A stretch of 64,000 nucleotides of DNA from assembly GCA_021613535.1 (NCBI GenBank), contig CP075492.1, positions 16,616,001-16,680,000 of the forward strand, read 5' to 3'. Made by a program: the position numbers and the translations under genes. This document shows, piece by piece, positions 31-57,566 of the stretch (position 1 is its first letter; the number at the start of each line of letters is the position of its first letter). The stretch comes from Adineta vaga (lineage: Eukaryota; Animalia; Rotifera). The notes under the pieces were generated by a model that saw only the letters and a list, made by a program, of their open reading frames with translations, searched no databases and was not told the origin of the DNA.

Positions 31-60
31 AGGGTGGGTATGAATACAAGAAACCCTCAA
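31..60. repeat. Telomere-like inverted repeat, copy h1 (short, degenerate)
   Basis: AGGGTGGGTATGAATACAAGAAACCCTCAA(G): G-rich left arm and ACCCTCAA right arm, as in the other copies. Confidence 0.6.
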
Positions 61-234
61 GTTGAGTCAATAACATGAAAACATTTATATTTTTCAAGAG
101 ATAGCATGACACATTCGATATAATGTCGTCATCATTTCTTGCGTAATAACCTACCTACATGTATAAATAATCTCGCTTTTTCCTTCGTTCTTTACATCTA
201 TACATGATTTATCACACAGTAATCGGTAATTCTT

Positions 235-1242
235 ATGGACTCTTCATTAAATTTATTCAATCATTCGACAATTGTCTATCGTTCAATAGAAAAACATGAA
301 CAACAGCAAGCACTTGATATGTTGTATTCTGTTTTTGAGAGTATTTCTGGTTGTTTTCAACGAGATTTTTCATCGGAAGCTTCGCCCAATTATCAAAACG
401 GTGATGCATTGGGTGCATGGCATAATGATAAATTAGTGAGTACCGTATTTATCCGACGTTTGATATTACGATCAAATGAAGATAATTTGGAATATCTATG
501 TGGTGGAATTTGTGATGTGGCTACCATACCTGAATATCGAAGACAAGGTCTCTCTCGACGTCTATTGACAATGGCTATTGACAAGATGGAGAAAAGTAAT
601 GCATTTGATCTTTCGATGTTGGGTACAGGCATACATAATCATTACACGACTTTGGGTTGGGAACAAATGCATCAACCTCATCCGGTAATAATTGATTGGA
701 AAAATATCATTGCGATACCTACAGATGTTACATGGCATTCGGCATCCGATATTTTGTCTAAGAACTCTGAGTCTTTGTTGAAAATCCATTCTAATAAACC
801 ACGCATCTATCAGATCGATCGATCACCCATTACAATATTTCAACAGTGGGTAACATGGGAATGGCAAAATGCTGAAGCAATTATCTGCGTTGAAGAATTT
901 GAAGGAGAGCAAGGATATATCGTGATCAGTAAACCAGACAATGAAACAGATGTATGTGTACTGGAATGGCGAGCTCCGAGTCTCAATCTCGAGAAGAAAC
1001 TTTTATCTCTTGCAGCCACAGAAATTCGTCGACGTCATGGACAAACAGTACCCATTCGTTTACATACATTACCACAGTATATGACAATTGACCAATTAAC
1101 AGAATGGGCGGGTCTAGTTAAGACTGAAATAAATTCAGATATAATGTTACGGAATATTCGATTACCAGACAATATTTACAACAAGATTAAAGAGGCCTTT
1201 TCTGATGGTCGTGCTACACATTGGACTGGTGATTTTTTCTGA
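235..1242 (+). CDS. GNAT-family acetyltransferase (Eis-like), intronless
   Basis: 335-aa ORF with acetyl-CoA motif A (GGICDVATIPEYRRQGLSRRLL) and a Y..LGW motif. Confidence 0.85.
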   Translation: MDSSLNLFNHSTIVYRSIEKHEQQQALDMLYSVFESISGCFQRDFSSEASPNYQNGDALGAWHNDKLVSTVFIRRLILRSNEDNLEYLCGGICDVATIPEYRRQGLSRRLLTMAIDKMEKSNAFDLSMLGTGIHNHYTTLGWEQMHQPHPVIIDWKNIIAIPTDVTWHSASDILSKNSESLLKIHSNKPRIYQIDRSPITIFQQWVTWEWQNAEAIICVEEFEGEQGYIVISKPDNETDVCVLEWRAPSLNLEKKLLSLAATEIRRRHGQTVPIRLHTLPQYMTIDQLTEWAGLVKTEINSDIMLRNIRLPDNIYNKIKEAFSDGRATHWTGDFF

Positions 1243-1332
1243 TTGACTTTATGTACAATAGACGTTCATAAGAATTGTCATTTTGAAAATATATTAGTCG
1301 ATGACCTTTGAGAACGGATGTGACTATTAATA

Positions 1333-1393
1333 GAGGGTGAAGAAGTCAGTGTTGGTATTGCATCGATTTGAAACCCATCCACACCTTCACCCT
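1333..1393. repeat. Telomere-like inverted repeat, copy h2
   Basis: GAGGGTGAAG...CCCATCCACACCTTCACCCT; AGGGTGAAG and CTTCACCCT are exact reverse complements; lies between two genes. Confidence 0.75.
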
Positions 1394-1581
1394 AGTAAAT
1401 TTGAAGGATGGCGATATTACAAAGCATAAAATAACGATAAGAAAAAATGAGTTAGATGTCATTATCTATATGTAAATATATATATTGTGTTTGTCTATTC
1501 TTATGGTAGCACGTCACACTTTGTATATAAATGCGTTTATCAGTTTGAATTTTATTCTATTTCACAATTCTACACTGTAAT

Positions 1582-10026: not shown

Positions 10027-10082
10027 GGGTGGGTGTGGGTTGTGAGTGAGAATCTTCTATACTATATCCTCATCCTCACTCC
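10027..10082. repeat. Telomere-like inverted repeat, copy h3
   Basis: GGGTGGGTGTGGGTTGTGAGTGAG...TCCTCATCCTCACTCC. Confidence 0.7.
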
Positions 10083-10601
10083 AAATTTTTGGTGCTGCTC
10101 CCATAGGTCGCAAGGAAGGTTGACGGGAGATTGACATGGCTATTGGAGAAGGGGATGGAAGTAGGGGCCCTGGGTGAAATTTCATCCATTTGATTATGTG
10201 ATGGCTAAGGAAACTAAACTGTCCACGACACTTCCGTATGTACAAGGAAAAGGCGAGAGAGATGAAATACGGAAAGTGGTTGAAATTTAATCCGTTTTTG
10301 AGCAGCTCATTTGATCGATCTTTAGAGTATCCATATATTACTACGTTTTCGCCTTGGTATAGTTGTGGCACCTGGAAGTGAAAGCTATTTAAAAGTAAAA
10401 TACTTACACCCACAGAATATTCTTTGGGCTATCGTGCCTTTTCGTCGATGCACGTATATTCGTCGTATATGAAATGTTAACCTGAAGTCTAAGGGTTTCC
10501 AGATCCGGACTGAATTGGAAATAGATTTGGGCGGGAACTGTTATAAAACGTGTGAATGCGGAATGCTATGCAATATAACTTCTTCTAATTAAGATATGCA
10601 C

Positions 10602-10640
10602 GAGGGTGAGGGTCTCTTGTATTAACACCCACACCCTCAA
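10602..10640. repeat. Telomere-like inverted repeat, copy h4
   Basis: GAGGGTGAGGGT-CTCTTGTATTAAC-ACCCACACCCTCAA(GATG); 12-bp arms with one mismatch. Confidence 0.9.
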
Positions 10641-11821
10641 GATGATGTAAATGTGGATTTTGATATTGAATCAAGATGAATATTAATAGGATAAGTTGAT
10701 TTGATGAAAAGACTTTGAAAACGTTGGTTGAGATTTTAAAAGATCTGGTAGCATTGCAAATGATCGAAATATTCGAATAGATCATAGAATATTTCATCTG
10801 TAAGATCTGCAATCTTCAGCATCTTTGGAAAATGTATGTATGGAATTTAAAGAATACACACAATCTTTTTTTTATTCTGTCGACAGCAGAGCTCGTGATC
10901 GAATGAAATAGGAAGAAGAAAAAGGAAATCAAGAATCTATGCCCTGCCATATTGAGATAATAAATTTCAGATGGATCGTATGATTGCATACATTCATCAT
11001 CAATCTTAAAACGAAAAGGAAAGAAAACTTAAGATTAGTTTAGAAAAATTGTTATTTCCTTGTTTAACCGTTCATGAAAACTATGAATTGACACTGAATG
11101 CAAATTTCTAGTGTGAGTGACTAGTACTGTTTGATAATAAATGAGACTAAAAACTAGCTTCGAGCTGAAATTCGTTAGAGGAAAATGAGTATACTTAAAA
11201 GAAAATATGGTTTGAATTTGTGCATGACAACATTTCCTGTTTCTTTTTTTCTAGAGTATAACGTACTGAACAATTGTCATATAACTATCTATACCCGATA
11301 ACAGTGTGTTTGTTTGTTTTTCTTCGATATATTCTCATTTATTTGAATCTTTTTGTTTATTTTCAGTTGTTATGTAGATCTCGTTTGAAAGTAGATTATG
11401 AAGTGAAGGAACTATGTATTACAGATAAAGCAACATCGAATTTTATTTAACTACAACTTTTTCTCTTCAACTAAAAGAAGGATCATATAAAAAATAGTTT
11501 CTGTGTTTGTGACAGGGTCAAAAAAGCATTCTCCTTAAAACGACCTTAAAAATTGAAAATCGAGAGTATGGTGGAGATAGTTAGAGGGTAAATATAAATG
11601 ATCATCTAACAAGAAAATGTTGTGCTATCTATCACAACTGCTTGCAGTCATACATGTAACTCCGTTCCTCGAGCTATTAGGAGTGGCGGACCATAGAGAC
11701 GACAACAACCAACTGTAATACAAACAACACCACATTTATTTTAAAAGATTTCAATACATATAATATGATAATATAATGAGATGAGGGTTATTTATCTGTT
11801 ACTGAAATAAAAATTATTTAG

Positions 11822-13505: not shown

Positions 13506-13558
13506 AAGGGTGTGGGTGAAGAAAAACACTTTTATCCTTACCCTATGGGCACATCCTT
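13506..13558. repeat. Telomere-like inverted repeat, copy h5
   Basis: AAGGGTGTGGGTGA...CCTTACCCTATGGGCACATCCTT. Confidence 0.75.
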
Positions 13559-13657
13559 GAAACATGCATACATAACTGTATTACTGTTTATTTTAAAAAT
13601 AATTATATTTCCGAGAAAAGACAATCCTTTTTTTTTGTTATCAAAAGAAAGTTATGA

Positions 13658-18496: not shown

Positions 18497-18559
18497 CTTG
18501 ACGGTGGGTGTGGGTGACGGTGAGACTATATTCTCTTGACTTTCATCCACACCCTCAAG
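18497..18559. repeat. Telomere-like inverted repeat, copy h6
   Basis: CTTGACGGTGGGTGTGGGTGA...TCATCCACACCCTCAAG(ATG). Confidence 0.85.
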
Positions 18560-19185
18560 ATGATCTTTTTAAATCTGTTCCTGACATAACGGTTGCTGAT
18601 TAGAGTAGTTGTTGTCACTGTTCTATTCTTTGTTGATAAACAAACATTCAATATCATTATTGAAAGTTATTGTTGTATGACTTTACTAACTTCTATTACT
18701 CGTCACACCCTGTTTCAAACCTGACTTTTTCATAAATTATTTCTCTTTTCAGACTTTTCATTGAAGACGTAGGAAATACATTTGTTATTCTCTTCACTGT
18801 AAAATAATTTCTATTCTAAAGCAAATATTCGTATTTGTACTTTTACAGTTTAATCAAGATTAAATTTAACTTGTTATCTGAATTTCTAAAGTAAATTACA
18901 TAACAATGATGAAATCTGACGGTGTTCAATACATTGTCTTTAAACAGTATAGAATGCTTTTTCCAGGAAAAAAGTGCTATTAACTATATTAAATATCACG
19001 CACTGTCAACAAAATATAACTGAAAGTAATTCAAACATTGTTATTCATTCGAGAAGTTTCCATGAGCCACCTCCACCTCAACTTCTTCTATATAAATGTT
19101 GTATTACTAATAGTAATTCTATCATATACAATAATTGATGAACAAGACTGTTATCAGTTGAAGATATTTTAGATATTTTTGTATA

Positions 19186-22100
19186 ATGGGATCATTATGT
19201 TTTCGAATGCGAGATGGTTTGATCAATTTAAATCTTTTTGAAAGTGGATTAACCGAAGCGAAAATTCTTCGACAAGAACGTTGGTCAACTCGTATTTATC
19301 TCGTTTTACTTATTATAGCTATTGTAATATTAGTTATTTATACGGCTTTTCAAATAGAAACAATTCATGTTACTATCAAATCACCTTCAATAGAAACATT
19401 TGAAAAACTTCAAATGAATTATGCAAATGTATTAAAATGTCCTTGTTCACAAATTGCTGTTAAATATGAACGTTTTACTCATATGCAACCGATCTATCAT
19501 CAGGTAATAAGGATCATATAGTAACAATTTAAAAAAAATCATTTAATAGGTATGTTCAAGTGTATTTATCAATGATGATTGGATTTCATCGACATTTCCA
19601 ACTGATATATTTAATTTATGGCCAATGGATGTTCGAAGAATTCTTAGTGCTCATGCACAATTTCTTCGGTCATTTTGTAAAAATGCTCAAAAAGGAATTG
19701 ATTATGCATTATCCAGTGTTCTTTCTGCATCATTAGTTAGTGCAGAAATTCTTTCTCGAGCTTTAGTACAATTACAAGTTAATATTCAATATGACTCTGT
19801 ACGATCAGCAGGTCAATGGCATTTATCTGTTTTAGTTAGTTCTCTTCGTCTTGTCATGACAGGTAGTCGTCTAATGAATGGTCTTAGTACAAATAGTTAT
19901 TTAACGATAACATCCAATGATTCTTTAACAGCAAATATTGGTATTAATATTTATCAATTAAATAGTTCGACAAGTCCTTGTTATTGTGTAACAATGGATA
20001 ATTGTGCAATGCCAGGTGCAATATATACAATTCCACGATTCCCAACATTTGGTTATTATAATTTAGAAAATCTTACAAATTATTCCATTCCAATTCAAGG
20101 TATTCAATCAGGTTGTTATCCTTTAGAAGGTGTTCTTAGTTCAACATTAGAATGTTATTATAATTTAACTTGTATTAAACTTCTTATATCAACTAATCAA
20201 TCATTTCAACCTTTATCAACAATATTACCAACTCGTTTTCTTCAATCAACAACTATTGAAACTCTTCTCAATGAATTACTCGTAGAAGAATGGTTAGTAA
20301 ATAGTTCTTATGAGAAGTATTTTAGTGAATGTGCTCCATTAACATGTGAATATTCATATAATCAACGAAATAATTTCTTAATTATTTTAACAACAATTAT
20401 TGCTTTAATTGGTGGTTTAAATACTGCATTAAGAATATTTATTCCGTCAATAATTCGACTAATTGATCAATTAATTGTACGAAATCAAGTTTCTCATCAA
20501 CGTCCTGTTGTTATTTGTTATGAAGAAACATCAAAAATGACTAAAATAAAAAAGAAATTTCTTTGGTTATGGTTAAAAATAAAAATGATTAATTTATTTG
20601 ATTCAGAATCAAATGATATTACAAAACAAAAATATGAACGTCATACAACTCGTTTATATATTTTCATAATTATAATTGCTTTCATAGCACTTCTTTGTTA
20701 TACTGTTATTACGGAAGAAACAATTGTTTATACAATTCGAAATCCATCGTTAGAAACTTATGAAAAACTTTATCAAATATATTCAAATACACTTCAATGT
20801 ATTTGTACTAAAATATCAATACCATATTCAAAAATTATTACTGTTCAAGCAAGTTATCATCAAGTATGTACAAGTTTATTTGTTGATCCAACATTTTTTT
20901 CACAATTAGCATATATAAGAAATGATATGTCTTATTATTCAGCTGATTTTATATTATTAAGTATTGAATATTTTCAATGGTTAACAACATTTTGTCGACT
21001 TTCTCAACTTGTTTTCTATAATCAATTATTAGCATTTCAAACAGATCTTTTTATTAATAATAAACTTCTTACTCGTGATACATTCGAAATTCAAGCAACA
21101 CAATTAGCTGATTTCTTTATAAATGATGTTCAACTTTATTTCGCTCGTGGTATTAAACAAATGCGTGAAATGTTCGGTATAACTCAACTTATATCAGCAA
21201 CATCAACTCTAACATATAAATTACCCATTAGACAAACAATATCTGGTAGTCAAATACAAGTTTTACCTCTTCAATTATTTTCAAATTGTTCATGTTTATC
21301 TAATCCAACATCATGTTCAGATAATGCAGCTTTCTATATATATAATTCACTAACTCAATCATTTGATATAGATTTTAAAATTGAAGGTATATATATTGCA
21401 TGTAGTTCAATGGAAACACTTTTTCAATCGAATCTTGCTTGTTGGTATTCATCAGATTGTTATCAAACGGTATGAAATTTAGAGAAAAAATGTAATAATA
21501 GAATTTATTTTTAGGTTATTAAATATTGGCAAAATCGAACTTATTCTCTTTCTGGATTACCAACTTTACTTAATAATTCAACACCTAGTCGATTTGAATC
21601 TTCAACATCATTATCAACTATTATTGAACATTTAATGGTTGATAATTGGTCGAAAAATATTTCATTTAATTCATATTATACAGAATGTATTCCTCAATAT
21701 TGTACGTATTCAATTACTCAACGAAGAAATATTCTTATCGTTATTACTATTTTAATTGGCCTTTTTGGTGGTTTAAATATTGTATTAAAACTAAGTATTC
21801 CATTAATAGTTCAATTAGGAAGTTGGTTTATTACACATCGGAAAGGTTAATATCAAAATAAAAGTCGTTTTTCTATTCACCCACATCCTCAATCCGACAG
21901 GAATTGTGCTAATAGCTTTTGATTTTTATATAGGATGTTTCAATCTATTTCGTTATAATATACGAGAATTACCTTCTAAATTTGTTCATTTAAATTTATT
22001 TTATCGTGAACAAAAATCATCTGAATTAACTCTTAAAAAAGAGTATCATTCTACACGATTATATATCATACTTTTATTCTTATCTATGTTAACATTACTT

Positions 22101-23207
22101 TTTTATAATACATTCATTCAATCAACAACAACAATAACAATTTTAAATCCAACACAATCTATTTATGAAGAATTTTTACAAAGAAAAGCTATATCATCAT
22201 TACAATGTCCATGTACTCATGTATCAATATCATATGGAACATTTCTTCAAGTAAATACAACATTACATGAAATATGTTCAAGTTCATTTATTGAACAAAA
22301 ATGGATTGAAAGTATATCGGCAAATGGTGATTGGACGAATTTAAGTCTAATTGATTTTTATGGACGTGGTGTACTTTATTTTCAAGGTCTTCAATCATTA
22401 TGTTCTTTCTTTCAAGAAAACATTACACATTATGTATCAGATTTTCTTTCTAGTACTTTGATTAGTGCACAAGTTTTATCTGAAATACAATTAATGACAC
22501 ACATTAATGATACAATTGAATATATAATAAGCTCAAGTAAATCAGATAAAAGATTTTTTTTTGGATTTGCAAAAGAATTAATGAATAGTAATCAATTAAT
22601 GACGATTTTTTCATCAAATTGGATTTATTCATCGATTAAATTTGATCCGAATTTAAATGGATTAGGAATTCCTTTACAACCTATTTCACATGGAAATTGT
22701 TCATGTTCTATATCGTCAAATTGTACTGAACCAGTTACTCATAATGGAGAAATAATTCCTGGTTTTGCTGTAGGTTGTGCACCTATTAATTCTCTTTTTC
22801 AATCATCTCTTATTTGTCTTTATAATCAAACATGTTTAAATCAAATTAATATTAATCAAATACCAATTACACCATTAATTGCACCTTTAAATAATAAATA
22901 TTCAATAAATCGAACAGTATCACAATTAGTTGATAATGTTTTTGATAAACAATGGTCAGTAGATACAAGTTATACTCACTATTTTAAACAATGTCAACCA
23001 GCAAGCTGTTCATATTCGTTCAATCCACGTAAAAATTTCTTGGAGATTATTGTCATTCTTCTAGGACTTTACGGAGGTTTAACAGTGGCTTTAAAAATAC
23101 TTTCACCGTATATTATTGCTTTTTTTCATTGGATCTTTTTTCGATATAAACAAGTCAATAATAATAACAACAACAACGTTCATCCAATGGATCATACTCG
23201 ATATTAA
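19186..23207 (+). CDS. Multi-exon membrane protein of three tandem 2-TM Cys-rich modules
   Basis: Exons about 19186-19503, 19550-21469, 21515-21845, 21934-23207 with GT-AG introns. Each module: NLF..TR(L/I)Y-TM, CxC..I...Y, (HQ/HE)xCxS, W....S(Y/F)..Y...C.P..C.YS, then TM with GGL. Confidence 0.8.
21877..21892. repeat. Half-site of the telomere-like repeat inside an intron
   Basis: TCACCCACATCCTCAA, one mismatch to the consensus right arm, within intron 21846-21933. Confidence 0.6.
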
Positions 23208-23272
23208 ACATAATTATTTTTCATGTTGTAACTTTGTTGTATGTACATACATTCGTTTTCTATACAATAAAC

Positions 23273-23308
23273 GTGGGTGACCGTCTTCGTCCTACAACCA
23301 CCCTCAAG
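23273..23308. repeat. Telomere-like inverted repeat, copy h7
   Basis: GTGGGTGA...CCTACAACCACCCTCAAG(ATG), directly after an AATAAA. Confidence 0.7.
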
Positions 23309-23910
23309 ATGGTCTCTATCGTCCAGAACTCTGTTTTTCTCACGATCAATTTTATACAGGATGTTCAAGAGCGACGAAATCTAATTGCTTAAAGATTCAA
23401 GTCAAAGACACTCCTAGACAGGGTAAAATGAATAATCAAACAACTGTAACAGATAATATTGTTTATCAGGAAATTTTTTCATGAATTTCACATAATTAGT
23501 TTTATCAGTTCATTATCTTAGTAATATTTTTAGTATTTGATCTTTTTGATATTTAATAAATCAAAATACTAATTTAAGACTTTCAGTGAGTCAAATTTTC
23601 CGCTAATGCCAAAGTCGAACTATACACAGGGGTCTCTAGCTAATATAAAACTAAATTCTCAACTGAAAACAAGTATTTCCTCTTCATTAATTATATTTTC
23701 AATAAAAAAAAACAAAGTAACATCTGTTCTTTTTATTCTATTCTTCATTATACTTAGTATTATACAAAAAAGAACAATAGTAAATTATACCATATAAATA
23801 TCAACATATGTCTTTAGAATTAGATTTTAAACATCCTGCAGAAAAAAAAGAACTTTTTCTTCTTTATAGATCTGATATTTTAGAATTATTCTAAATGTGT
23901 TTTAGTTATT

Positions 23911-29631: not shown

Positions 29632-29684
29632 AGGGTGTGACTGATGTTCTGGGAATTCTTCTTCACCCTTATTCACACCCTCAA
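29632..29684. repeat. Telomere-like inverted repeat, copy h8
   Basis: AGGGTGTGA...TCACCCTTATTCACACCCTCAA; AGGGTGTGA and TCACACCCT are perfect 9-bp arms. Confidence 0.8.
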
Positions 29685-29847
29685 AACTATTTTAAAAGAC
29701 GGTAGTAACGCGCCATCTCTTGAGATTTACCTGATTTTAAAGGGTAGGTTCTTGATATCTTACCAATCAAAAGAAAAAATAAACAACATCATTATTGTCT
29801 CCTTCTCCTTCATCATCATGTGCGAATAGAAGCAAAAGAAAATAATT

Positions 29848-32884: not shown

Positions 32885-32938
32885 TTGATGGTGGGTAGAC
32901 ACGGATGTACGATTTCTTTAGTTTCAAACATCACCTCA
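32885..32938. repeat. Telomere-like inverted repeat, copy h9 (degenerate)
   Basis: TTGATGGTGGGTAG...ACATCACCTCA. Confidence 0.45.
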
Positions 32939-33740
32939 GGATACAAAAACGAAAAGTTTGATTATTTTCTTCATACAGAGATGAAGAAAAAGAAACAAAA
33001 ACTTTTAACTATACATTTAGAACCTTTCGCTTAGGTATGATGATTATGATCCATTCATGTTCATCAGAAGCAGCACGCCCATATTATGTTGTTTAAATAT
33101 TTCTTTGCAATTTTCAATGTTTTTATTCTCAAATTCGAAACTGCTCGATTCTTTGGTAAAATTCATTTGTTTATTTCTGTCACGTTACAGATGTGCGTGA
33201 ATAATAATTCTGTTGACGTTTTTCTTTGACATTGATGAATGATTGTTGAATATTCGAACTCAAAATTCATTTTTGTTCTTTGCTGACAGTCTAAGTGATT
33301 TTGCAACCATAAAAAACACAAGTTTATTAATGTACATTGATATGTTTATTTTCTGAATCGCCCTCTTTAGTTTTGATTGAAAAAGAGAAATTCGCGTTAA
33401 GTACAAAAATGTTTAAATGTCCTTATGAATAATAGTTGAAAAAGATAATAGATGATGACATTATATCTTTTCTATAGACTGTCTATCACTTCTTTTAATT
33501 GATAATCAAGCAAATAACTGACGAGAAATCATTTTTTGGGCGTTAACATTACGTTTAATCATGAAGGTATCTATTTTTCTCTTTCCTATCGAAGAGAAAC
33601 AGAGAGAGACTAACGGGCTGTCTCTCTCTTTTTTTGTTTGAAAATTAAAAAACAAAAAGTGAATGCCACTATTCTGTGTATAAAAAGCAAGTGAAAAAGC
33701 CAAAATAGTTAAAAACAATTTTATTTCAATCAAGTTTCAA

Positions 33741-34905: not shown

Positions 34906-34966
34906 TTGAGGTAAGGGTAAGAGTCAAGAGAATATATTCTCTCGCGCATCCACATCCACACCCATC
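34906..34966. repeat. Telomere-like inverted repeat, copy h10
   Basis: TTGAGGTAAGGGTAAGAGTCAAGAGAATATATTCTC...CATCCACATCCACACCCATC; spacer matches the reverse complement of the h6 spacer. Confidence 0.75.
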
Positions 34967-35735
34967 GTTGCATTTCATAAAGTGTCATGAAATAATTATT
35001 TGACGATTATTAGATTTCTCTCATTGCATTCAAACTAAATAATTCATTTTGAAGTAGACATGTATATATATATGACAGAATATAGTGGTATAGTTGCGAA
35101 TATTTCTATAAAATTTTCTAAATCTCTCTTTTAAAATATGTTGATTTCATAGTAATTGAGGTATGACGAAAGATTGACCATTATCATTATACTCACAATA
35201 GCACAATTATTTTTATCCGATACAAGTAGTTGATGTTCACAATCGAATAGTATATCATACAATCCTGGGAATTTTTCTTTAATAGAACATTCGAACTTAC
35301 GATGAAAACAAAATTGACATCTTATAAGGATAAAGTCTACGTCGAAACTTCAAAGTATTTTTTCCAATTATTTATTATTCCTTTTTTTTATAGTAGAATG
35401 ATTTTCTATAGGAAGTAGATGATTAAAAAAAAAGAAAGTCTTTGTAAATAACAGCAGAACATACATTGCTATTTGTTGTTTTACCCATTTCTCTCCTCGC
35501 CATCCTATTCCTATATAAATATAAGCAGAGCTTTTGGAAATAATTATTTTTGAAGATCTGCTTATATAAACATGAAAGAGTTTCTCTCACGCATCTAATT
35601 CTTAAAAAAAGTTTCCGCTTATATTTGCATAATGAAATTTATTCGTTGGCTTTTGTAATATCATAGGTTTCCTTTCAATTTGTTGTCTTAGATTAAAAAG
35701 AAAACTTTTCACTACATAATAATACTTTATTAATA

Positions 35736-39631: not shown

Positions 39632-39702
39632 CTTGAGGATATGAGTGTGATTATTCTTTTAATCGTCACCCAAACACTAATGCCATTACCTTCATCCACA
39701 TC
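39632..39702. repeat. Highly degenerate telomere-like inverted repeat
   Basis: CTTGAGGATATGAGTGTGA...TCACCCAAACAC...TTCATCCACATC, between two genes. Confidence 0.4.
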
Positions 39703-40640: not shown

Positions 40641-40686
40641 GAAGGGTGTGGGTGAGTACTACATTTATCTAATACGCACATCCTTC
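40641..40686. repeat. Telomere-like inverted repeat, copy h11
   Basis: GAAGGGTGTGGGT...ACGCACATCCTTC; 13-bp arms with two mismatches, between convergent genes. Confidence 0.85.
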
Positions 40687-40765
40687 GCGAATTCTTCTTT
40701 TGACTTTGAAAAATAATTTTATTCAAAATTAAAATCAAGTTTTTTGTTCAATTTCGATAATTTTA

Positions 40766-43515: not shown

Positions 43516-43570
43516 GAGGGTGGGTGTGGGTATTCGCACATATCAAGGCGTACCCACATCCACATCCTTC
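43516..43570. repeat. Telomere-like inverted repeat, copy h12
   Basis: GAGGGTGGGTGTGGGTA-TTCGCACATATCAAGGCG-TACCCACATCCACATCCTTC. Confidence 0.9.
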
Positions 43571-43767
43571 ATCAATAAAATATGTTTTTGTTATGAGAAG
43601 AAAAAAAAGTAAAGATGCCGATATTAAAAAGAAAAAGATACATTTCATAGAATTTAAGTTTTTTCAATATGTTCTACAATTTAGTTAATTTTATATTTTT
43701 TATGTCGATTATTAAATTAAATGAATTAGAAAAAAAAACTCATTTTTAATTGATGTGATAATGAGTT

Positions 43768-46700: not shown

Positions 46701-48570
46701 ACAACAACAACGTGGATAATGCATGACAACCAACTTCGTCAGCTCCATTAAAACAATTCCAAAAGCCATCGCATCGTGTATAAGTATTATTACATTGCCA
46801 ATATTCACATTCCGTTTCATCTGTTTCGTTACGTCCGTTAATGATAATAGGTGTGAGTTCTGTAAAGCCGTCACAAATAGTCGGAAATGATATCTGACTT
46901 CTACTATATAAAAGTGATATTTGTTCATCTTCGCAAACACCGATTTCATCAGTGGAGCAATGACACTCGCGATCTTGAACCAATGCTGGAGAGATGCACC
47001 AATTTTGTGTGTTACATTTGAAAAGATCATCTAATCCATACAGTAGACAGGAGCCATTGATCGAAGAACATTGTTCATCATCACTGTAGTCACAATCAGC
47101 CACAAAATTACAAAGACGATATTTTGGAATACATTTCGATGAATTCATACATTGGTACATGGTTACATTATTACAACTTGAAGAATAATTATGATTAATT
47201 TTGTTACAATGAGACAATTTTTGGTACAAAGGCAAAACATATTTGTTTAACCAAGTATGTTTAGGAGGTGGTCGGCCAAAATCTAACGGAAAATCAACAG
47301 GATGTCGACAGGTGGAAGTATCGAACGAAAGTAACGATTTATTCGGATAGAATCCATCACAAAACTGATCATTATAGCATACGTATCGGGGTGGTAACAT
47401 TCGAAATAAGGGGTCGAGTAGGTCTTGTTTGGTGTAAACAAAAAATATATGACCGAAAAGAACTGCACCGGCTGGTACGTTAATCATATCTGGACAGGTA
47501 TGATTGATAATATTACTGCATGTGAAACCGGAACAATGACTATAACATTGTTGGTTTGGTAGCTGTATAATATTTAACTGACATATGACTGCAATCCAAC
47601 AATCATTAGATATTAAGGCCGGTGCTGAATCGAATAACAGTTGACCGAGAAGCTGATTACGTTTTGAGGTACATGAACTTGTTAACCTAAATAAATTACT
47701 AGGAGAATCGTACCGTATTGGGCATATAATATCCTCTTCTTCAAATGCTGGTTCACCGAAAACAACTTGGTTCAATCCGAAATTGTTCGTTCTAATCTTG
47801 AGATATTCATCTGTCGCATCAAGACATTCGAAAGAATGTGGTCCATCATGTAAAAATGATTGCGATATACATTGTTTGTTAGCACATTCGTATTCATCTT
47901 GTGCACAATGACTTATTTTTAATTCCCAACACGATCCTTCGTCGACTCTATCTTGACAATCAACAGTTCCGTCACAAATTTCACTCCAATCGAGACATAT
48001 CGATTTCGAACCTCGGTTACATGCTAAGTGCATGTAACATGTTAGATTTTCCGGATTATAGTCTTGTTGATAAAATTCATGAATCACTTCATACAATGTC
48101 GAATCATTAGTTTTGACAATGTAGCTATCAAATGAATATTGACATGATGTGCCAAATCTAGGCGATGTACAATTGTAAAAAACTTGCTTTGCTAGTGCAG
48201 CTGATTGATTGGCATTGGAAAGATGATTTAAGTAATACTCATAATGTTCCATAACATCCAAAGGTGCTGACCAAAGGTATAATTGTTCTGTGGTAATGTT
48301 TTGTTTGTAGAGATCAGCAAACGTCAACTTTTTATCAATACTATTCTCTTCAATAGTCCATTCTAGTGGCCATTCAGTTAAACAATAATGAATTATGAGA
48401 TGAGTCTTACTGTCTTTTTTGACAGAAGCAGGAATATGAAAACAGTCATGTTGAAATACAATACCACTGTTATTAGCATCGAGTTCATTAGTAGAATAAA
48501 GATTCATTTGAGGGAAAGCGGTAACCCAATGTAGTAGAGCACAATACAGAAAATCGACGAAGAAATACAT
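43768..48570 (-). CDS. LDLa/EGF-repeat rhodopsin-like GPCR (GRL101-like ectodomain), single 1600-aa ORF
   Basis: Signal peptide, several LDLa repeats (CDGTVDCQDRVDE, CDGFWNCFNGADE), EGF repeats (CQNNGQC...CICSQGFTGERC), C-terminal 7TM. Confidence 0.9.
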   Translation of the reverse strand: MYFFVDFLYCALLHWVTAFPQMNLYSTNELDANNSGIVFQHDCFHIPASVKKDSKTHLIIHYCLTEWPLEWTIEENSIDKKLTFADLYKQNITTEQLYLWSAPLDVMEHYEYYLNHLSNANQSAALAKQVFYNCTSPRFGTSCQYSFDSYIVKTNDSTLYEVIHEFYQQDYNPENLTCYMHLACNRGSKSICLDWSEICDGTVDCQDRVDEGSCWELKISHCAQDEYECANKQCISQSFLHDGPHSFECLDATDEYLKIRTNNFGLNQVVFGEPAFEEEDIICPIRYDSPSNLFRLTSSCTSKRNQLLGQLLFDSAPALISNDCWIAVICQLNIIQLPNQQCYSHCSGFTCSNIINHTCPDMINVPAGAVLFGHIFFVYTKQDLLDPLFRMLPPRYVCYNDQFCDGFYPNKSLLSFDTSTCRHPVDFPLDFGRPPPKHTWLNKYVLPLYQKLSHCNKINHNYSSSCNNVTMYQCMNSSKCIPKYRLCNFVADCDYSDDEQCSSINGSCLLYGLDDLFKCNTQNWCISPALVQDRECHCSTDEIGVCEDEQISLLYSRSQISFPTICDGFTELTPIIINGRNETDETECEYWQCNNTYTRCDGFWNCFNGADEVGCHALSTLLLFNCTDEYQHICVSPKTNQLTCLPLAKANDGRIDCAGGTDEPQLCRSLDHHPSFTNFYCRTNLGEYCVAYKHLCPLNNYEINADEKFCYTSPDMMQKRNIRKEAYGSRPSGVENFLCTREIDVKKPKIKYFSLGKLTDSIDQMALQQTNDMIFDSPIRQINAHQQRQRCQRGLPLQVWFNTKRNLSIETCLCPPSFYGNACQYQNQRVSLTLRIQTYSDSRRTVFTLIISLIDDSVERNIHSYHQLTYLYIRDCQTKFNIYLLYSSRPKNLTKNYSIHIDIYEKISWIYRGSYLVAINYPFLPVHRVAKELYIPRSRGNLQHCSDYQCVHGQRIKYVETSHDVCFCQCDSGWYGKYCTLSYVSGCSSDSRSIGITVTNRSICICPLHKWGSRCLLNNQICFANRTATCQNNGQCIPNDDSVSFGKEYSCICSQGFTGERCETEDNKLILSFHKDIVLPQTVLIHFIRVMDNGPPENGSTFKTILTYQNAITVRWSRPFHVAFLDLYNRNYYLVTVQKHYKPMSTVVRTINPIDRCEHISQVLNKTILELHPLRRIKYYQLPCEQHSPVLSCFYDDKHICLCSDHNHRRSTNCFEFNHHSEHTCLGQSTCEHGAHCVQDRAICPQTSVCICPKCFYGTLCQFSSNLFDLSFDVILGYHIQPNIPLIYQPSIVQFSMILVTILILFGIVNSILCIITFENKDLRQTGSGIYLLSSSILSLFTLIIFALKYGILIIAQMTYIENRPFLSLQCISIDFLLRVGLTLDQWLNSFVGVDRAITVIKGTSFDKKNSRKMAKYFTFVGIIMAISTTIHDPLHRQLTDEDGDGINERRIWCTLKFSNSLRTFNLFIVMFHFFLPFFLNVISAVIIIIMTTRQRTTVQKQQSYQNQLRIQLKHYNHLLTAPCLLIILALPRLIISFVGGCMKSTSSSWLFLIGYLISFTPTMLIFFIFILPSQTYRVVLKNTIKRYRQNIRTRLHLHP

Positions 48571-49562
48571 CGTTGAACACTTTGTGAAAGTCTCGAGTGA
48601 ATATAATTATATGAAAATTTTTCCTAATTATCCATATACATATCTCACTTTCTCGATGAGAAAATGTTGAGTTAAAAGTTTTTTTTTATTATAAAATATC
48701 ATGATGGATGTTGACAGAAATTACTTCTGCTCACATCCTGTTTGTTAAAATTTTAGAAGCCTCTGTAATATCATGCAGATTTTATCTAGTAGTGAACATG
48801 TGGCATTCTTCTGCACGGAAACAAATCTGAAAGCAACAATTTACTCAATACTCTATGCATTTTGTTTCATTCTAAATGCTAAAACCAATATTGATTCAAG
48901 TTGCCTTTGCGATCACTTATGCCACTGTCATGTTTCTTTTATTCAGGAATGTTCGATGCGAATGGTATATTTCGAGCCTTTTGTAAGATCAGGATTCGTC
49001 TTAAGGATTAACTTAGCTCGAAGTAGATAAAATTATTGAGAGCATCGTATTTTAGTCTGAAGATGCGAGACTGTTGTGCATACAAAATCTTTCATTGATG
49101 TTTGTAGACAATCTATTATAGATGTGGATATATAATTATAATATTTTCAGAAAGAATAATAGACAGAGAACATCTTTCCGATGTTCAACTGACTCTTGGT
49201 AAACATCGTTATCTGTTATCATGATATCATCATTCGAAGTTTGTTGGTCAGCTGAGAAGCGAAAAATACCATATTTTTATCTGACGATATTAGCTATGTC
49301 TTCACTCGAGAGACGAATCTCAATCTGTTTATTCGAAACGATATGAAAAAGAATGTGTATAGAAGATAGGAGAAACAGAAGAAGAAGAGTATGTAAAAGC
49401 ATGTTTGTATACATGCCTCCCCACCGATGAAAAATGAGCATACATTGAATAAAAAAAGACGACACGTGAAAAAATTCGAAGAGCAAACAAAATAGAATAA
49501 TAGTAGTGCACGAATATGAATTGTTCAGTGAAAAACAAAAATTTAATATTTGAGAACTGGAA

Positions 49563-49610
49563 TAGGGTGTGGGTATTCGCACATATCAAGGCGTACTCAC
49601 ACCCACCCTA
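49563..49610. repeat. Telomere-like inverted repeat, copy h13
   Basis: TAGGGTGTGGGTA-TTCGCACATATCAAGGCG-TACTCACACCCACCCTA; 32 bp identical to h12. Confidence 0.9.
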
Positions 49611-49929
49611 ACCGCTTTCACGACTTAGTTTATCAACCGGTTTTCGGCGATAATTCGATTTCTGATTACAGGTCAGACACGTTTAGAAAAAATAGGCGTC
49701 GAAACGTCTGCATCTTTTACGCAAATTTCACGAAAAGTTTGTTATGTGAACTTGTGAAATAGTCAACTGCAAAAAAAATAGTTTTTGCTTATATACTTTT
49801 CTTTTTCGTCCGTTTTACGGTAGCAGTCGGGAACGCCGATTGATGCCGTAAAACGCGATAAAGTTATATAGTGTTCAAACGCGTTTTTCAACTGTCTTGT
49901 CTGCTTGGGTATGAGTATACATCTCTCAA

Positions 49930-50603
49930 CAGCATTTCTTAATAAATAAGAATAGAACCATTATTGTTATTATTATTATTATTCCACTCTAACGAAGTCA
50001 GTGTTACAGTGACAGTTTTTCAGTATTTGTACTGAAATTGCGCGTCTTTAGATTAAAAATTATATGAATGGTTTTAAAGATTGAATTCAATTAGAAAATA
50101 AAATGTTGTTGATATTCGACGATACCTTTTGCATAAATACTTGAAAAAATATAAATATTTATTACTTTAATATCGTCATCATTCATAAAATTATTAAAAT
50201 CATTATCCATCTCACCTTTCTTTGATACATCGCCAGCCGATTCTTCTGCATTTTCTTTCCTTTTAAAGTAGGAAGTCAAAGATTTTTGTCTTGACGACAT
50301 TCGTTGAACGTTATATTACCAAATGAAATAGAACAATACGAACGATATAAAAAATACAACGTAAAGAACAATTAGTCTGATATGAATGAACTTTATTCAT
50401 CTTTTTGTTCTTTTGAATGGACATCATGATCTATAACGAACAATAGACAATTTAGTACATCGATAAACTGAGTTGTGTAGTGTTCATATCCGACTGTTCT
50501 ATTCTTTTCTCATCAAAAAGCATATGCTATACATCCCTGATTAATAAAGTCGGCGAACCGAGATCTCGGGTGGGCGCCGCCCAACCCTCTGAGTAAAACA
50601 CTG
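49930..50603 (-). mobile_element. Internally deleted hAT-like DNA transposon
   Basis: Flanked by the direct repeat TCTCAACAG (49924-49932, 50604-50612). Minus-strand end reads CAGTGTTTTACTCAGAGGG with a GC-rich subterminus. Short ORF 50091-50300 begins MSSRQKSLTSYFKRK, like hAT transposase N termini. Confidence 0.6.
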
Positions 50604-54664: not shown

Positions 54665-55151
54665 GTAATTTAATTCTTCAAAATTCTTTTTCTTATTTAA
54701 CGGATATCAATGAAAAAAGTGCCGATGTAATTAAAAATGTACTTTCGTTAAATATCATTATAAAATAAACAATTTTCATAAAATTGTTTTAATAATGTTT
54801 AATAGTAGTTGATTGCATTGAAATATTTTCTAAATGAATATTAATGACTAACGATCGAATGTTTCTTTGATTATTTTCCACAAAGTCACATGATATCATA
54901 GCTCTTTTTCTTATCATATCGTTTATTGATTTATTTTTTAGATTATAACAAATTTTATAATATACAAAGTTCACATGTTGTACGTGATGACGAACCTTTT
55001 TTTGAAAATCCTATTTCTCGAAAAAAATGTGCTTGTTGACCAGACCATCCCTGAGGGAGGAGGTATTAAGGGGTTTTAAATTTTTTTCTCAAAATTATTT
55101 CAGACATATGAATCGACTCAGTTTAAAAGCTGATTCCAAATATAGTGTTAG

Positions 55152-55224
55152 TTTTGAAAGGTGTGTGTGGATTTGGTTGTACTAGTCATAAAGTAAGGTT
55201 AATGTGACACCCACACCCTCAAAA
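55152..55224. repeat. Telomere-like inverted repeat, copy h15
   Basis: TTTTGAAAGGTGTGTGTGG...CACCCACACCCTCAAAA. Confidence 0.8.
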
Positions 55225-55875
55225 TATTTAATTCAAATATCGCACTATTAAAGTGAACATATACTATAGGCACATAAATGTCTTAACGTTAATACTAAAT
55301 GATGGACAGACTGACTTATTTAGACGATAATATCTTTGTAGTTTCTTTCTTCGTTCGCGTGTTCTCTTTTTGCATCATATAATTCGATAAAGAATCTTTA
55401 GACATAATATCATGTAATAATAATTGATATAATCTAGCAACTAACTGCCATACAAAATTAACTTGCAAATGTATTGAAAGAGGGCGTTTGTATCACATTT
55501 ATTTTCTCTGAATATTTTTATTCTGTGATATTGAATCACATGAGAAAATGTTATTAACTAAAATAAACTCTTAAATTCGCCTACATACATCCTCATTAAA
55601 ATGATATACATCATGTGATTCTACATCAAGTATTGAATTGATGAAAAAAAAAGTTCTTACACGATCATCATGTGCTTTTTACCGTTATAAATCGTTAATG
55701 AAAAAAAAACATGTATTTAAAATTCTATGATATATTATTTCTTTTTTTTTTATGAAATTAAAGTCCTTTTCTCAAGTATTCTAGAAAAATAAATACATAC
55801 TTTCATTACGACTCATAAAATACATATATATTAACTTTTTATCTAAATAATTGTTGTATTTCTGTAAATATTATA

Positions 55876-57417
55876 ATGAGAGTTGTCACGCGGTTATATT
55901 TATTTATTATTCTTCAATTGTTGAATTGTATTCAATTCACAAAAGAAGATCGATCTAGCTCAATAATTAGTAATTTCGGTTGGGAATTTCGTCCTTTTGA
56001 CAATTCTTTTCCTCCTTTACTGACAATTACAACAAAAAGAGTTCTGTATTGTAGTATTCAATGTAATCAACATCCAGATTGTCGCACATATGATTTTGAT
56101 TATGATTCTACACAATGTCGTTTATGGGATGCTGATATAACAACAGGTTCAATTATAGTTTCATCATCGAAACCAAAATCAATTGTTGGTACTATTCGAT
56201 TCTCTTCTGATATGTATGAAAATATTTATAATCAATCATGTGATAAATGTATTCGAAGTCGATATTTAACATGTGATATAAATACAAATACTTGTCAATG
56301 TCCTTTAAATACATATTGGAATGGTTCAATGTGTTTAAGACAATTATTTCGATATCAAATTTGTTCAATGGTAAATGCTTGTCGAACAGATTTGAATCTT
56401 ACTTGTGAACCACAATGTGATTTAACTTATCGATGTTCATCAAGTATGTTAAATTTGTCTATAGATTTGTTTATTAATAAATTTGATTTAGTTTCACCTA
56501 TTGGTGTTGGTCAAACAATAGTTGGTTCTTGTAATGGTACTACTGGTATAGGTTCAACAGCATTAGTAGGTCCCTGGGGTATTCATATTTCTCCACTTGA
56601 TGGAAGTTTGTACGTTGCTGATTGCGATGGTCTAACATTTAACAGTTATTCAACATTTTCACGTACAGGACAAATAATTCTTTCGAATAATCTGCTCCAA
56701 CCACTGGACATATTTGTTGATAAGACAGGAACTGTCTATATGACTGATGGATGGTTCAATGATGGTGCTCTGTTTATTCAACGAAATGGAGTAATTAATA
56801 GAACTATTCCTGAGACAGGATTATCAACAGGTTCTTGCCTTAATAATGGACTCCATAGTGCTTATGGTGTGGGAGTGGATCAATTTGGTAACATATATAT
56901 ATCATTATGTACATGTGATATTGTAGTTAAATGGGCACCAAATGTTTTGAATGGTACAGTTGTCGCTGGACAGCGATTAAGTCCAGGATCAACAAGTACT
57001 AAACTGAAAAATGTTAGATTTGTTCATATAAACGATAATCAAAACGCATTTTTTGTTAGTGATTATCAAAATAATCGTATTCAAAAATTTATTATTGATG
57101 GAAATGGAACAGGAATCACAGTAGCAGGAAATGCTGTTGCAGGAATAGGTTTAAATCAGCTGAATTCACCTGCTGGTATTTGTGTAACACGTGATGGACA
57201 AACTCTTTATGTTGCTGATTATAATAATCATCGAATTATGAAATGGACAATCGGTGATAGTCAAGGTTCACTTGTAGCCGGTAGTGCTTCTGGTGTAGCA
57301 GGTAATACTGCTCAACTTCTCAATAAACCTGCTGATATAGCTCTCGATCCAAGTGAGACGTATCTCTATGTTTCAGACTATAACAATCGTCGAATTCAAC
57401 GATTTCGTCTTCGATAG
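55876..57417 (+). CDS. Secreted PAN/apple + Cys-rich + NHL-repeat protein
   Basis: Signal peptide, CSIQCNQHPDCRTYDFD...CRLW, CQCPLNTYWNGSMC, NHL repeats; probable in-frame intron ~56444-56491. Confidence 0.85.
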   Translation: MRVVTRLYLFIILQLLNCIQFTKEDRSSSIISNFGWEFRPFDNSFPPLLTITTKRVLYCSIQCNQHPDCRTYDFDYDSTQCRLWDADITTGSIIVSSSKPKSIVGTIRFSSDMYENIYNQSCDKCIRSRYLTCDINTNTCQCPLNTYWNGSMCLRQLFRYQICSMVNACRTDLNLTCEPQCDLTYRCSSSMLNLSIDLFINKFDLVSPIGVGQTIVGSCNGTTGIGSTALVGPWGIHISPLDGSLYVADCDGLTFNSYSTFSRTGQIILSNNLLQPLDIFVDKTGTVYMTDGWFNDGALFIQRNGVINRTIPETGLSTGSCLNNGLHSAYGVGVDQFGNIYISLCTCDIVVKWAPNVLNGTVVAGQRLSPGSTSTKLKNVRFVHINDNQNAFFVSDYQNNRIQKFIIDGNGTGITVAGNAVAGIGLNQLNSPAGICVTRDGQTLYVADYNNHRIMKWTIGDSQGSLVAGSASGVAGNTAQLLNKPADIALDPSETYLYVSDYNNRRIQRFRLR

Positions 57418-57510
57418 ACTTTTAAAATTTATAATTTAAATATTGTTTTATTTCAAATGATCTTAAGAAAATAGAAAAAAAGTGACATGCATTATTTTTT
57501 GTTTTGAATC

Positions 57511-57547
57511 TATTACTGTTGAGGGTGTGGGTCTGTCCCTCGTAATA
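57511..57547. repeat. Telomere-like inverted repeat, copy h16 (compact)
   Basis: TATTAC-TGTT-GAGGGTGTGGGTCTGTCCCTC-GTAATA, between convergent stop codons. Confidence 0.75.
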
Positions 57548-57566
57548 ATTCGTTTTTGAGAAAGCA

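Follow-up and report, generated by a model that had tools for sequence, protein, structure and literature searches.

The question raised by this locus is why short, inverted tracts of telomere-like repeat recur between the genes of a bdelloid rotifer chromosome. The window, by which we mean the whole 64,000-nucleotide stretch of Adineta vaga DNA analysed here, belongs to a chromosome of 20.35 Mb, the end of which is 3.7 Mb away. A sequence-only reading had described some 16 imperfect palindromes in it, plus a weak one, and had offered scars of telomere-healed fragments, recombination cassettes, boundary elements or a tiny mobile element as possible origins. Palindromes are present at all the places listed, but only 13 are clear, the other four being weak or one-armed (Table 1). 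We favour, with somewhat better than even confidence, the first of these origins: the hairpins would be joints at which DNA ends, each first healed by the addition of telomere repeats, were fused. The cassette interpretation gained no positive support, and the mobile-element one is disfavoured.

Table 1. Hairpin joints and associated features of the window, with the class of each hairpin copy.
Feature	Position	Strand	Class	Details
Hairpin joint	31..75	.	clear	short G arm; CTCTTGTATT-family spacer; C arm terminating in CCCTCAAG
Hairpin joint, long spacer	1333..1400	.	clear	stop codon of GNAT gene 90 nt before
Hairpin joint	10027..10085	.	clear	G arm strong, C arm decayed
Non-coding repeat, ~430 bp	10170..10600	.		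34 genome matches
Hairpin joint	10602..10650	.	clear	C arm, then TCAAGATG
Hairpin joint	13506..13565	.	clear	G arm perfect, C arm decayed
Hairpin joint, -31.6 kcal/mol	18497..18565	.	clear	TATATTCTCTTGAC-family spacer; C arm, then TCAAGATG
Complete block, one gene of unknown function	18551..23279	+		94% identical to C5:2021504-2026225
Hairpin joint, short arms	23273..23312	.	clear	outer edge of C arm (23306) is the start of a further repeat family
Hairpin joint	29632..29690	.	clear	
Hairpin joint, decayed	32885..32950	.	weak	
Hairpin joint	34906..34975	.	clear	G arm decayed; spacer family as at 18497, opposite orientation
Hairpin joint, decayed	39632..39700	.	weak	
Hairpin joint	40641..40705	.	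clear	G arm perfect, C arm decayed
Hairpin joint	43516..43575	.	clear	22-nt spacer with only 2 occurrences genome-wide, the other at 49563
Hairpin joint	49563..49615	.	clear	22-nt spacer as at 43516, direct orientation
Doubtful copy	49904..49960	.	one-armed	G-like arm only; C arm not convincing
Hairpin joint	55152..55225	.	clear	G arm decayed, C arm perfect
Perfect TTGAGGGTGTGGGT tract	57511..57560	.	one-armed	perfect G arm; C arm poor, vestigial at most; between two convergent stop codons

All of the hairpins fold, with energies ranging from -8 to -38 kcal/mol, and their arms are composed of GGGTGT/GGGTGA repeats, i.e. the telomeric hexamer of the species. That this hexamer is TGTGGG, as the sequence-only reading had stated, is borne out by the literature (PMC8494291, PMC7943196) as well as by arrays in the present genome. 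The 14-mer core, with up to two mismatches allowed, was found six times, compared with 0.05 expected. The observation that the G arm always comes first holds true, but says little alone, because it applies to any palindrome on either strand. The informative asymmetry is that between G-then-C and C-then-G pairs. When the 100.8 Mb of the genome (6 contigs) was scanned with a strict pattern comprising a G-rich arm, a spacer of 9-56 nt and a C-rich arm, 763 G-then-C joints were found as opposed to 5 in the reverse order. In the 264 kb around the window, the corresponding counts were 41 and 1 with 7-mer seeds, and 55 and 9 with 6-mer seeds; given this local density (41-55 copies per 264 kb), the whole genome probably contains thousands of copies. 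Head-to-head structures of the same type, with arms of up to 76 nt, were also identified in Adineta steineri and two Rotaria species.

The two arms of a hairpin were made independently of each other: the complementarity of arms scores 8.67 within a hairpin and 8.49 across hairpins, and the identity of the outer flanks is 3.15 both within and between hairpins (P=0.48). Arm length and register are variable, no conserved core site is present, and in many copies one arm is heavily decayed. With regard to the outer ends, the 102 half-sites exhibit a nested start motif, with TGA in 36, TTGA in 29, CTTGA in 16, ATCTTGA in 13 and CATCTTGA in 6, whereas at most 0.01 occurrences of the 7-mer ATCTTGA are expected. 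This motif is mostly found on one side of the hairpin only. It is not restricted to hairpins, as about one-fifth of some 100 listed starts of longer internal GGGTGT arrays carry a motif of the ATCTTGA type when judged by eye, and a 12-repeat array in L001 also begins with it. Each arm thus looks like a separate, de novo telomere tract, often with a putatively templated ATCTTGA start.

The sequence-only reading had asked whether breakpoints between related sequences fall in the hairpins, and the ends of homology do coincide with the arms. The 94% identical copy on C5 covers exactly one block, from the C arm inside its left hairpin to the G arm inside its right one. Five of 41 paralogue ends lie in hairpin footprints, which make up 2.3% of the sequence (P=0.002). 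For the ART-NHL gene family, the best paralogues begin at 40690-40698, within the joint at 40641, and several copies of the ~430 bp repeat stop at 10600, 2 nt short of the next G arm. The before/after pair, a single case from a different genus, comes from Rotaria sp. Silwood2: to the right of a 60-nt C tract, starting at its outer edge, L046 and L045, from two assemblies, share 99.9% identity, while the sequence to the left is unrelated and L045 has no telomeric tract there. This is one tract-free allele, but its left flank differs too. For the hairpins of the window, no empty-site allele was found, the two that were checked being present in both haplotype contigs. In A. steineri, allelic copies have been restructured while their flanks remain 91-98% identical. 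The joint at 40641 was recovered in DNA contigs from samples of 2015 and 2022; one probable RNA contig spans it and another stops 10 nt before it.

The spacers are not random filler. Some belong to families which recur with consistent ends amid unrelated flanks, many others are unique, and purine/pyrimidine skew is observed in 59% compared with 36% of the background, AGAGA and GAAGA being enriched; simple end joining would predict neither the families nor the skew. Some of them resemble the linker that follows the hammerhead at the 3' ends of Athena/Terminon elements, where the order is hammerhead, GTAGAATGCTTTACTC, C-tail and TCAAGAT; one spacer family reads CAGGCTTTACTC... The C arm followed by TCAAGAT is identical to the 3' tail junction of Athena/Terminon copies in L031, L033 and L036, and the literature describes Terminon 3' tails as (ACACCC)n or (TCACCC)n (PMC6431247). 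Hammerheads were found only at true Athena ends elsewhere, and a search of the window against Rfam gave no match of any kind. In a manual count, the arm bearing ATCTTGA showed no correlation with spacer orientation (11 versus 11), and therefore one template cannot give both the motif and the spacer. The spacer shared by the joints at 43516 and 49563, which lie 6 kb apart and flank a 1600-aa EGF-domain gene with unrelated outer sequences, is left unexplained by the joint model.

As for the enzyme that acts, the order of events and the mode of end ligation, all of which we infer, the 3' end of each of two DNA ends would gain a short telomere-type tract before ligation. Extension of the left fragment would place GGGTGT repeats on the top strand, and extension of the right fragment would place them on the bottom strand, the top strand then reading ACACCC; joining would therefore yield G-then-C only, never C-then-G. 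The tracts may be seeded by a reverse transcriptase (RT), either telomerase or a telomerase-related Athena enzyme, whose putative template would carry ...ACACCC-UCAAGAU, so that many tracts would start with a copy of ATCTTGA of variable length. The spacer would be whatever sat between the tracts at ligation, in a subset possibly material like the linker 3' of the hammerhead at Athena/Terminon ends. The segments between joints would have been double-stranded pieces capped at both ends, which, once broken off, were either reunited at the original site or became fused to, or were copied into, a different one. The joints thus look like marks of the cutting, copying and reassembly of gene-rich chromosome-end regions.

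The placement of the hairpins bears on several other readings. Only 1 of 55 copies in the 264 kb lies inside an ORF of at least 120 aa, although such ORFs occupy 43% of the sequence, which upholds the claim of intergenic placement. Blocks holding exactly one gene, which had also been pointed out, do exist but are no more frequent than chance: with a crude gene model, 6 of 13 blocks hold one gene compared with 6.1 expected under random intergenic placement (P=0.70). A Pfam search of the window's ORFs returned cellular gene families only, and among these ORFs neither an integrase, tyrosine or serine recombinase domain nor a transposase or RT was detected. This leaves without positive support an attC-like system, in which cassettes of one gene each would pass from array to array through a recombinase that recognises the palindrome in its folded form. 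Imperfect intergenic palindromes, the duplication on another chromosome of a block delimited exactly by arms, and one gene bracketed by two hairpins with a common spacer would all suit such a system, yet its sites would here be telomere repeats of variable register, and in Rotaria the alternative haplotype lacks any site where the breakpoint falls; we consider it quite improbable. We give as little credence to a selected cis-element, which might act as a bidirectional transcription terminator, as an RNA hairpin at 3' ends or, through a telomere-repeat-binding protein, as an insulator. The intergenic placement would suit it, several copies are found 60-250 nt past stop codons, convergent gene pairs outnumber divergent ones around the hairpins (16 versus 5), a probable RNA contig ends just before one hairpin, and the structure type has been kept across bdelloid genera. 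However, gaps in the background are already convergent in 18 cases and divergent in 8, another probable RNA contig runs through the same hairpin, the distance to 3' ends is inconsistent in tandem gene pairs, and, relative to the gene upstream, RNA hairpins are no stabler in the sense direction (13 of 29, P=0.67). The heavy decay of single arms and the restructured A. steineri copies likewise speak against sequence constraint, also for a boundary element.

A tiny non-autonomous mobile element, whose G arm, spacer and C arm would multiply together as one unit that persists only between genes, appears unlikely. It could spread, for instance, through reverse transcription of a small hairpin RNA by the Athena RT or as a foldback or MITE-type DNA element. 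Recurring spacer families with consistent ends and a copy number in the thousands would be expected of it, and the C arm with TCAAGAT, being the Athena 3' end, is a plausible recognition module for an RT. Nevertheless, no target-site duplication was observed (longest shared flank word 4.22, compared with 4.39 in random pairs), no termini are common to both ends, the terminal motif being one-sided in most copies, and a hairpin's own arms match no better than foreign ones. In addition, many spacers are unique and one has only two copies in the genome, the homology of duplicated blocks stops inside the arms rather than running through an inserted unit, and the window encodes no transposase or RT. 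A MITE or TIR transposon was rejected for the lack of target-site duplications, of termini conserved on both ends and of a transposase in the window; a snap-back product was rejected because the arms are no more complementary than those of different hairpins; and an RNA element is not evident, RNA stability being without strand bias. Finally, the hairpins might be mere remnants of the head-to-tail Athena/Terminon chains, added one by one at the chromosome end, that have already been described. Chains of this kind exist nearby: in L026, positions 1-800 contain two C-tails with a 5'-truncated, hammerhead-bearing element between them, one strand of L030 carries a pair of C-tails, and host genes captured between Terminon units have been reported (PMC6431247). 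Sequential terminal addition, however, would give one tract orientation per chromosome arm, whereas here neither kind of tract outnumbers the other and the two form G-then-C pairs 9-56 nt apart, and the window has neither hammerhead nor RT. The orientation data already contradict this reading, which we regard as very improbable.

Fusion of telomere-healed ends is therefore the origin that we favour, given the G-then-C order, the two independently made arms, the ATCTTGA starts, the lack of target-site duplications and the homology ends within arms. As a tentative extension, which we hold to be possible but rather less than probable, bdelloid subtelomeres might grow by accretion, with chromosomal or foreign pieces fusing end-to-end after telomere seeding at both 3' ends. 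These pieces would be fragments from desiccation breakage or foreign DNA and would fuse to a chromosome end or to a break; every fusion would leave a G-then-C hairpin, and the distal cap would become the new telomere. If so, the massive horizontal gene capture near bdelloid telomeres would have a concrete molecular route, the hairpins would constitute a countable and datable record of each capture or repair event, and ATCTTGA would reveal the sequence beside the template of the rotifer telomerase RNA or of an Athena mimic.

Among known systems, integron attC sites and bacterial REP/BIME elements are also imperfect palindromes between genes, but the likeness is one of appearance only: the rotifer joints have telomere-repeat arms of variable register in an animal host, the window's ORFs include no integrase, other recombinase or REP-associated transposase, and one gene per block does not exceed chance. 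At the fusion site of human chromosome 2, where two chromosome ends were once joined, a G-strand array precedes a C-strand one. The same G-then-C order, together with a break of homology at the junction and independently made tracts, is found at the rotifer joints. Head-to-head fusion relics such as that site (PMC5037601) are, in contrast, single and have long arrays, whereas the rotifer arms measure 8-76 nt, are separated by spacers and recur every few kilobases. Athena/Terminon elements have in common with the hairpins the C-rich tail, (ACACCC)n or (TCACCC)n, with TCAAGAT after it in the present genome; their truncated copies are capped by telomeric repeats, and genes of the host are found between units (PMC6431247, PMC8557442, PMC3846280). 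Terminon chains are nevertheless head-to-tail, with a single tract orientation, and consist of RT-bearing units, whereas the hairpins are head-to-head, have no upstream hammerhead or RT/accessory ORFs and flank ordinary cellular genes.

In mutation-accumulation lines of A. vaga, deletion breakpoints carry neotelomeres, with TGTGGG repeats and Athena fragments, and it was proposed that neotelomeres form and are then removed, leaving scars (Sci Adv 2026, PMC13564844). Those additions are one-sided and at recent breaks; fixed head-to-head tract pairs are not described, and the text does not use the terms hairpin or palindrome. The short interstitial telomeric sequences (ITSs) of primates and rodents, including the TERC-ITS loci, are likewise short tracts of the species' own hexamer at former breaks (Nergadze et al. 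2007, PMC2246262). At mammalian double-strand breaks, the repeats that telomerase inserts are accompanied by a few nucleotides copied from the sequence 3' of its template, the break ends show microhomology to the template, and fragments of non-template RNA are at times co-inserted, which parallels the Athena-linker-like spacers (PMC2246262). In mammals a single end was extended, so that each ITS is one tract with one orientation, whereas both ends would have been extended in the rotifer, giving inverted tract pairs. The rotifer joints also differ in that they probably number in the thousands and are concentrated in the subtelomeric megabases, at the ends of duplicated or rearranged blocks.

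Our analysis suggests that the telomere-like hairpins of the window may be joints between two DNA ends, each of which would have been given a short telomere-type tract at its 3' end before ligation. The palindromes described in the sequence-only reading are real: a G arm of GGGTGT or GGGTGA units, a spacer and a complementary C arm were found where they had been placed, with folding energies of -8 to -38 kcal/mol. Of the approximately 16 copies and one weak copy claimed, 13 are clear, whereas those starting at 32885, 39632, 49904 and 57511 are weak or one-armed. It had also been stated that the G arm comes first, which is true but holds for either strand of any palindrome; the informative contrast is that between G-then-C and C-then-G structures. 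With a strict pattern, this contrast amounted to 763 versus 5 matches per strand in the whole genome. In a 264 kb sample, comprising the window and twenty 10-kb samples of the genome, it was 41 versus 1 with 7-mer seeds and 55 versus 9 with 6-mer seeds. As the strict pattern captures only 4 of the 55 catalogued copies, the genome probably contains several thousand hairpins. On contig 1, strict matches are found from 0.13 to 2.4 Mb and again from 11.5 Mb onwards, with a density that rises toward the end, and the central 9 Mb contain none among the matches listed.

The intergenic placement was borne out, a single copy out of 55 lying within an ORF of at least 120 aa, when such ORFs represent 43% of the sequence. 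Several blocks do hold exactly one gene, as had been noted, but no more often than by chance: 6 such blocks out of 13 were observed versus 6.1 expected from random intergenic placement (crude gene model). The hairpins at 40641 and 43516 were recovered in contigs from DNA sampled independently in 2015 and 2022, a diverged haplotype among them, and are therefore not assembly artefacts. No hairpin-lacking allele was seen among the assembled DNA contigs; that DNA contigs break at hairpins is uninformative.

With regard to the limits of homology, a BLAST search of the A. vaga genome with the window revealed a 94%-identical copy of 18551-23279 on contig 5. The match begins within the C arm of hairpin 18497 (ACCCTCAAGATG...) and stops within the G arm of hairpin 23273 (...GTGGGT); past either arm, BLAST found no contig-5 homology. 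Three further ends of paralogue families are listed in the table. Of 41 distinct match ends (identity of at least 80%), 5 fall within hairpin footprints, which cover 2.3% of the sequence (P=0.002). Self-BLAST of the 264 kb returned tandem repeats only and no informative block duplicates, and no contig encoding a window protein was on record. As homology ends at the arms, the two arms of one hairpin belong to different neighbouring segments, and the blocks between hairpins appear to be real units. Each segment has a C tract at its left and a G tract at its right, a pattern characteristic of double-stranded fragments whose 3' ends have both been extended.

Hairpins are also present in other bdelloids. 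In contigs fetched via homologues of a window gene, G-then-C structures were identified in Adineta steineri, Rotaria sp. Silwood1 and Rotaria sp. Silwood2, with arms of up to 57-76 nt in Rotaria and one A. steineri hairpin carrying ATCTTGAG. Didymodactylos showed 0 hairpins in 19 kb, a sample too small to interpret. Two assemblies of Rotaria Silwood2 are 99.9% identical for 6.8 kb from the exact outer edge of a 60-nt C tract and unrelated to the left of this tract; the hairpin is complete in one of them, and the other lacks any telomeric tract. This pair would represent the before and after of a break that was capped and then joined to another capped end. One allelic hairpin of A. steineri has been restructured, 54 nt being replaced by CTTGAGAG beside the G arm together with an indel in the C arm, and its flanks are still 91-98% identical. 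This suggests either that the joint was broken and healed more than once or that the palindrome is unstable. A 2.8-kb indel between the A. steineri contigs L039 and L040 was discarded, as it abuts an N in the assembly. Unlike the hairpins, a 410-bp insertion in Rotaria sp. Silwood1 (L048, see table) has the look of an ordinary MITE-like polymorphism.

The A. vaga genome comprises 100.8 Mb in 6 contigs, with (TGTGGG)n arrays present, and the window, with a GC content of ~30%, is located 3.7 Mb from the right end of contig 3 (20.35 Mb). In the chromosome-level assembly, transposable elements and genes acquired horizontally abound in the subtelomeres (PMC8494291). The window ORFs belong to ordinary accessory families: GNAT acetyltransferases and an FAD monooxygenase, ADP-ribosyltransferases fused to TPR or NHL repeats, rhodopsin-type receptors, OTU, Kelch and methyltransferase proteins, an EGF-domain giant protein and NACHT. 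Reverse transcriptases, transposases and recombinases were not found among them, nor were tRNAs or Rfam families found in the window.

Features of the window (plain coordinates), of other A. vaga loci and of Rotaria contigs
Feature	Location	Observation
Non-coding repeat, ~430 bp	10170-10600	34 matches at 67-89% identity on all six contigs, core regions included; several copies end alike at 10600; no ORF or Rfam match
Paralogue family end	10600	Two bases before a G arm
Large minus-strand gene	13658-18055	OTU deubiquitinase domain at its end
Paralogue family end	23306	Edge of C arm
Paralogue family end	40690-40698	Edge of C arm
ADP-ribosyltransferase and NHL-repeat gene	40690-42650	>40 paralogues at 74-85% identity on all contigs, mostly in subtelomeric parts; DNA-contig depth 10-30x that of neighbours
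Classical head-to-tail Athena-type unit	L026 1-800 (C3:16.82 Mb)	C-tail, ~730 nt with hammerhead core, C-tail
36-bp minisatellite	L027 8598-9012 (C3:16.848 Mb)	Contains GTGGGTGT; copies >99% identical
Athena/Terminon 3' end, type I hammerhead	L030 1501-1760 (C3:19.5 Mb)	Two hammerhead ends in tandem, 177 nt apart
Athena/Terminon 3' end, type I hammerhead	L031 (C3:17.5 Mb)	
Athena/Terminon 3' end, type I hammerhead	L035 (C1:16.76 Mb)	
Athena/Terminon 3' end, type I hammerhead	L036 (C5:2.55 Mb)	
Tandem array, units of ~70-150 nt	L041 16400-17230 (Rotaria sp. Silwood1)	Adjoins a large G-then-C hairpin; unit is a GTGTGG-type arm, a core with CTGATGAAAC and a CACACC arm
GGTAAC-rich palindromic insertion, 410 bp	L048 9111-9522 versus L050 (Rotaria sp. 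Silwood1)	In one assembly only; CGCAACTA duplication at flanks

Several other origins of the hairpins were considered. Insertion of a MITE, or any endonuclease-dependent insertion, was rejected, as the search for target-site duplications (TSDs) found no direct repeat between flanks above chance (4.22 vs 4.39). Snap-back or self-primed synthesis, cruciform copying and the copying of one arm from the other were likewise rejected, given that complementarity is no higher within a hairpin than between arms taken from different hairpins (8.67 vs 8.49); the outer flanks of one hairpin are also no more alike than those of different hairpins (3.15 vs 3.15, P=0.48). Selection on an RNA hairpin was not supported either, as no bias in sense-strand stability was observed with respect to the upstream gene (13/29, P=0.67). 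No fixed distance from hairpins to gene 3' ends was found, and neither the hairpins nor the tandem array of Rotaria (L041) gave a hammerhead ribozyme hit in Rfam.

The spacers measure 9-56 nt (median 22). A single RNA template for ATCTTGA and spacer was rejected, since the orientation of the spacer bears no relation to the side of ATCTTGA (11 concordant vs 11 discordant, manual count). A polarity along chromosome arms was set aside as well, as spacer orientation is not significantly related to the chromosome strand (12 vs 20, P=0.22). Some spacers form families, one of which, CAGGCT[A/T]TACTC..., resembles the Athena linker and starts close to where the ribozyme would cleave. Taken together, spacers show a strand skew (59% vs 36% background) and an enrichment in AGAGA, GAAGA and AAGAG; in A. 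steineri and Rotaria, too, purine-rich spacers of a similar kind were seen. These families and the purine skew are only partly understood and are not explained by the proposed mechanism. Hairpins 43516 and 49563 share an identical 22-nt spacer, in direct orientation and absent from the rest of the genome, and bracket (43516-49615) an intronless 1600-aa EGF-domain gene. Their outer flanks are unrelated and their arms differ at several positions despite the identical spacer. Joints may have been duplicated or converted locally; the joint model does not predict this shared spacer.

Among 102 half-sites, many have a nested motif at the outer arm edge, before the first GGG: TGA in 36, TTGA in 29, CTTGA in 16, ATCTTGA in 13 and CATCTTGA in 6. 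Variable-register priming on a template ...ACACCC-UCAAGAU would give such a graded start. Most hairpins have ATCTTGA on a single side, and whether one side carries it looks independent of the other. By eye, an ATCTTGA-type motif also precedes about one fifth of the ~100 listed starts of longer GGGTGT arrays elsewhere, one example having 12 repeats and lying 170 nt after a methyltransferase-like gene; the remaining listed starts are preceded by unrelated sequence.

To the observed geometry, arm independence, templated start, lack of TSDs and coincidence with homology ends, the joint model adds the enzymes, the template and the ligation step that we infer. A double-strand break or a free DNA fragment would expose 3' ends, and a telomerase-type reverse transcriptase would seed a short tract on each, often copying ATCTTGA first; an Athena 3' RNA fragment may sometimes be copied onto the tract. 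The extended ends would then be united through end joining, or the reverse transcriptase would jump from one extended end to the other as its template. Extension of both 3' ends followed by their union necessarily gives the G-then-C order. The reported formation of neotelomeres in A. vaga and presence of Athena fragments at deletion breakpoints (PMC13564844) fit the seeding step.

If the hairpins are joints of doubly healed ends, the genome would contain thousands of fixed, sequence-readable records of breaking, healing and joining. The hairpins would then delimit the subtelomeric units that undergo duplication and rearrangement, would link neotelomere formation, Athena retroelements and end joining, and would indicate the likely template neighbourhood of the rotifer telomerase RNA. 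The joint model would also be open to direct tests. Bdelloid rotifers survive massive chromosome breakage and, to our knowledge, exceed all other animals in their number of foreign genes, which are mostly located near telomeres. Head-to-head, hairpin or inverted tracts are undescribed in the literature examined, where telomeric tracts are mentioned only as 'short stretches of telomeric repeats' (PMC2861651); an earlier description of inverted tracts may exist elsewhere.

Two known systems resemble the hairpins. In mammals, telomerase acting at double-strand breaks copies, along with the first repeat, a few nucleotides adjoining the 3' side of its template (PMC2246262), which provides a precedent for the ATCTTGA start. 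Athena/Terminon 3' ends, located via their hammerheads (31.6-33.6 bits for the type I hammerheads in the table, slightly under the Rfam cut-off), consist of the hammerhead, GTAGAATGCTTTACTC, (ACCCAC)n and TCAAGAT, followed by unrelated flank. According to the Rfam alignment, the predicted ribozyme cut should fall right before the linker that precedes the C-tail. The unit in L026 shows that same-orientation Athena chains coexist with head-to-head joints. The junction of C-tail and TCAAGAT is common to the 3' ends of these elements and to the hairpin arms, and it is consistent with the published view that Athena attaches to a tract already seeded beforehand (PMC6431247, PMC8557442).
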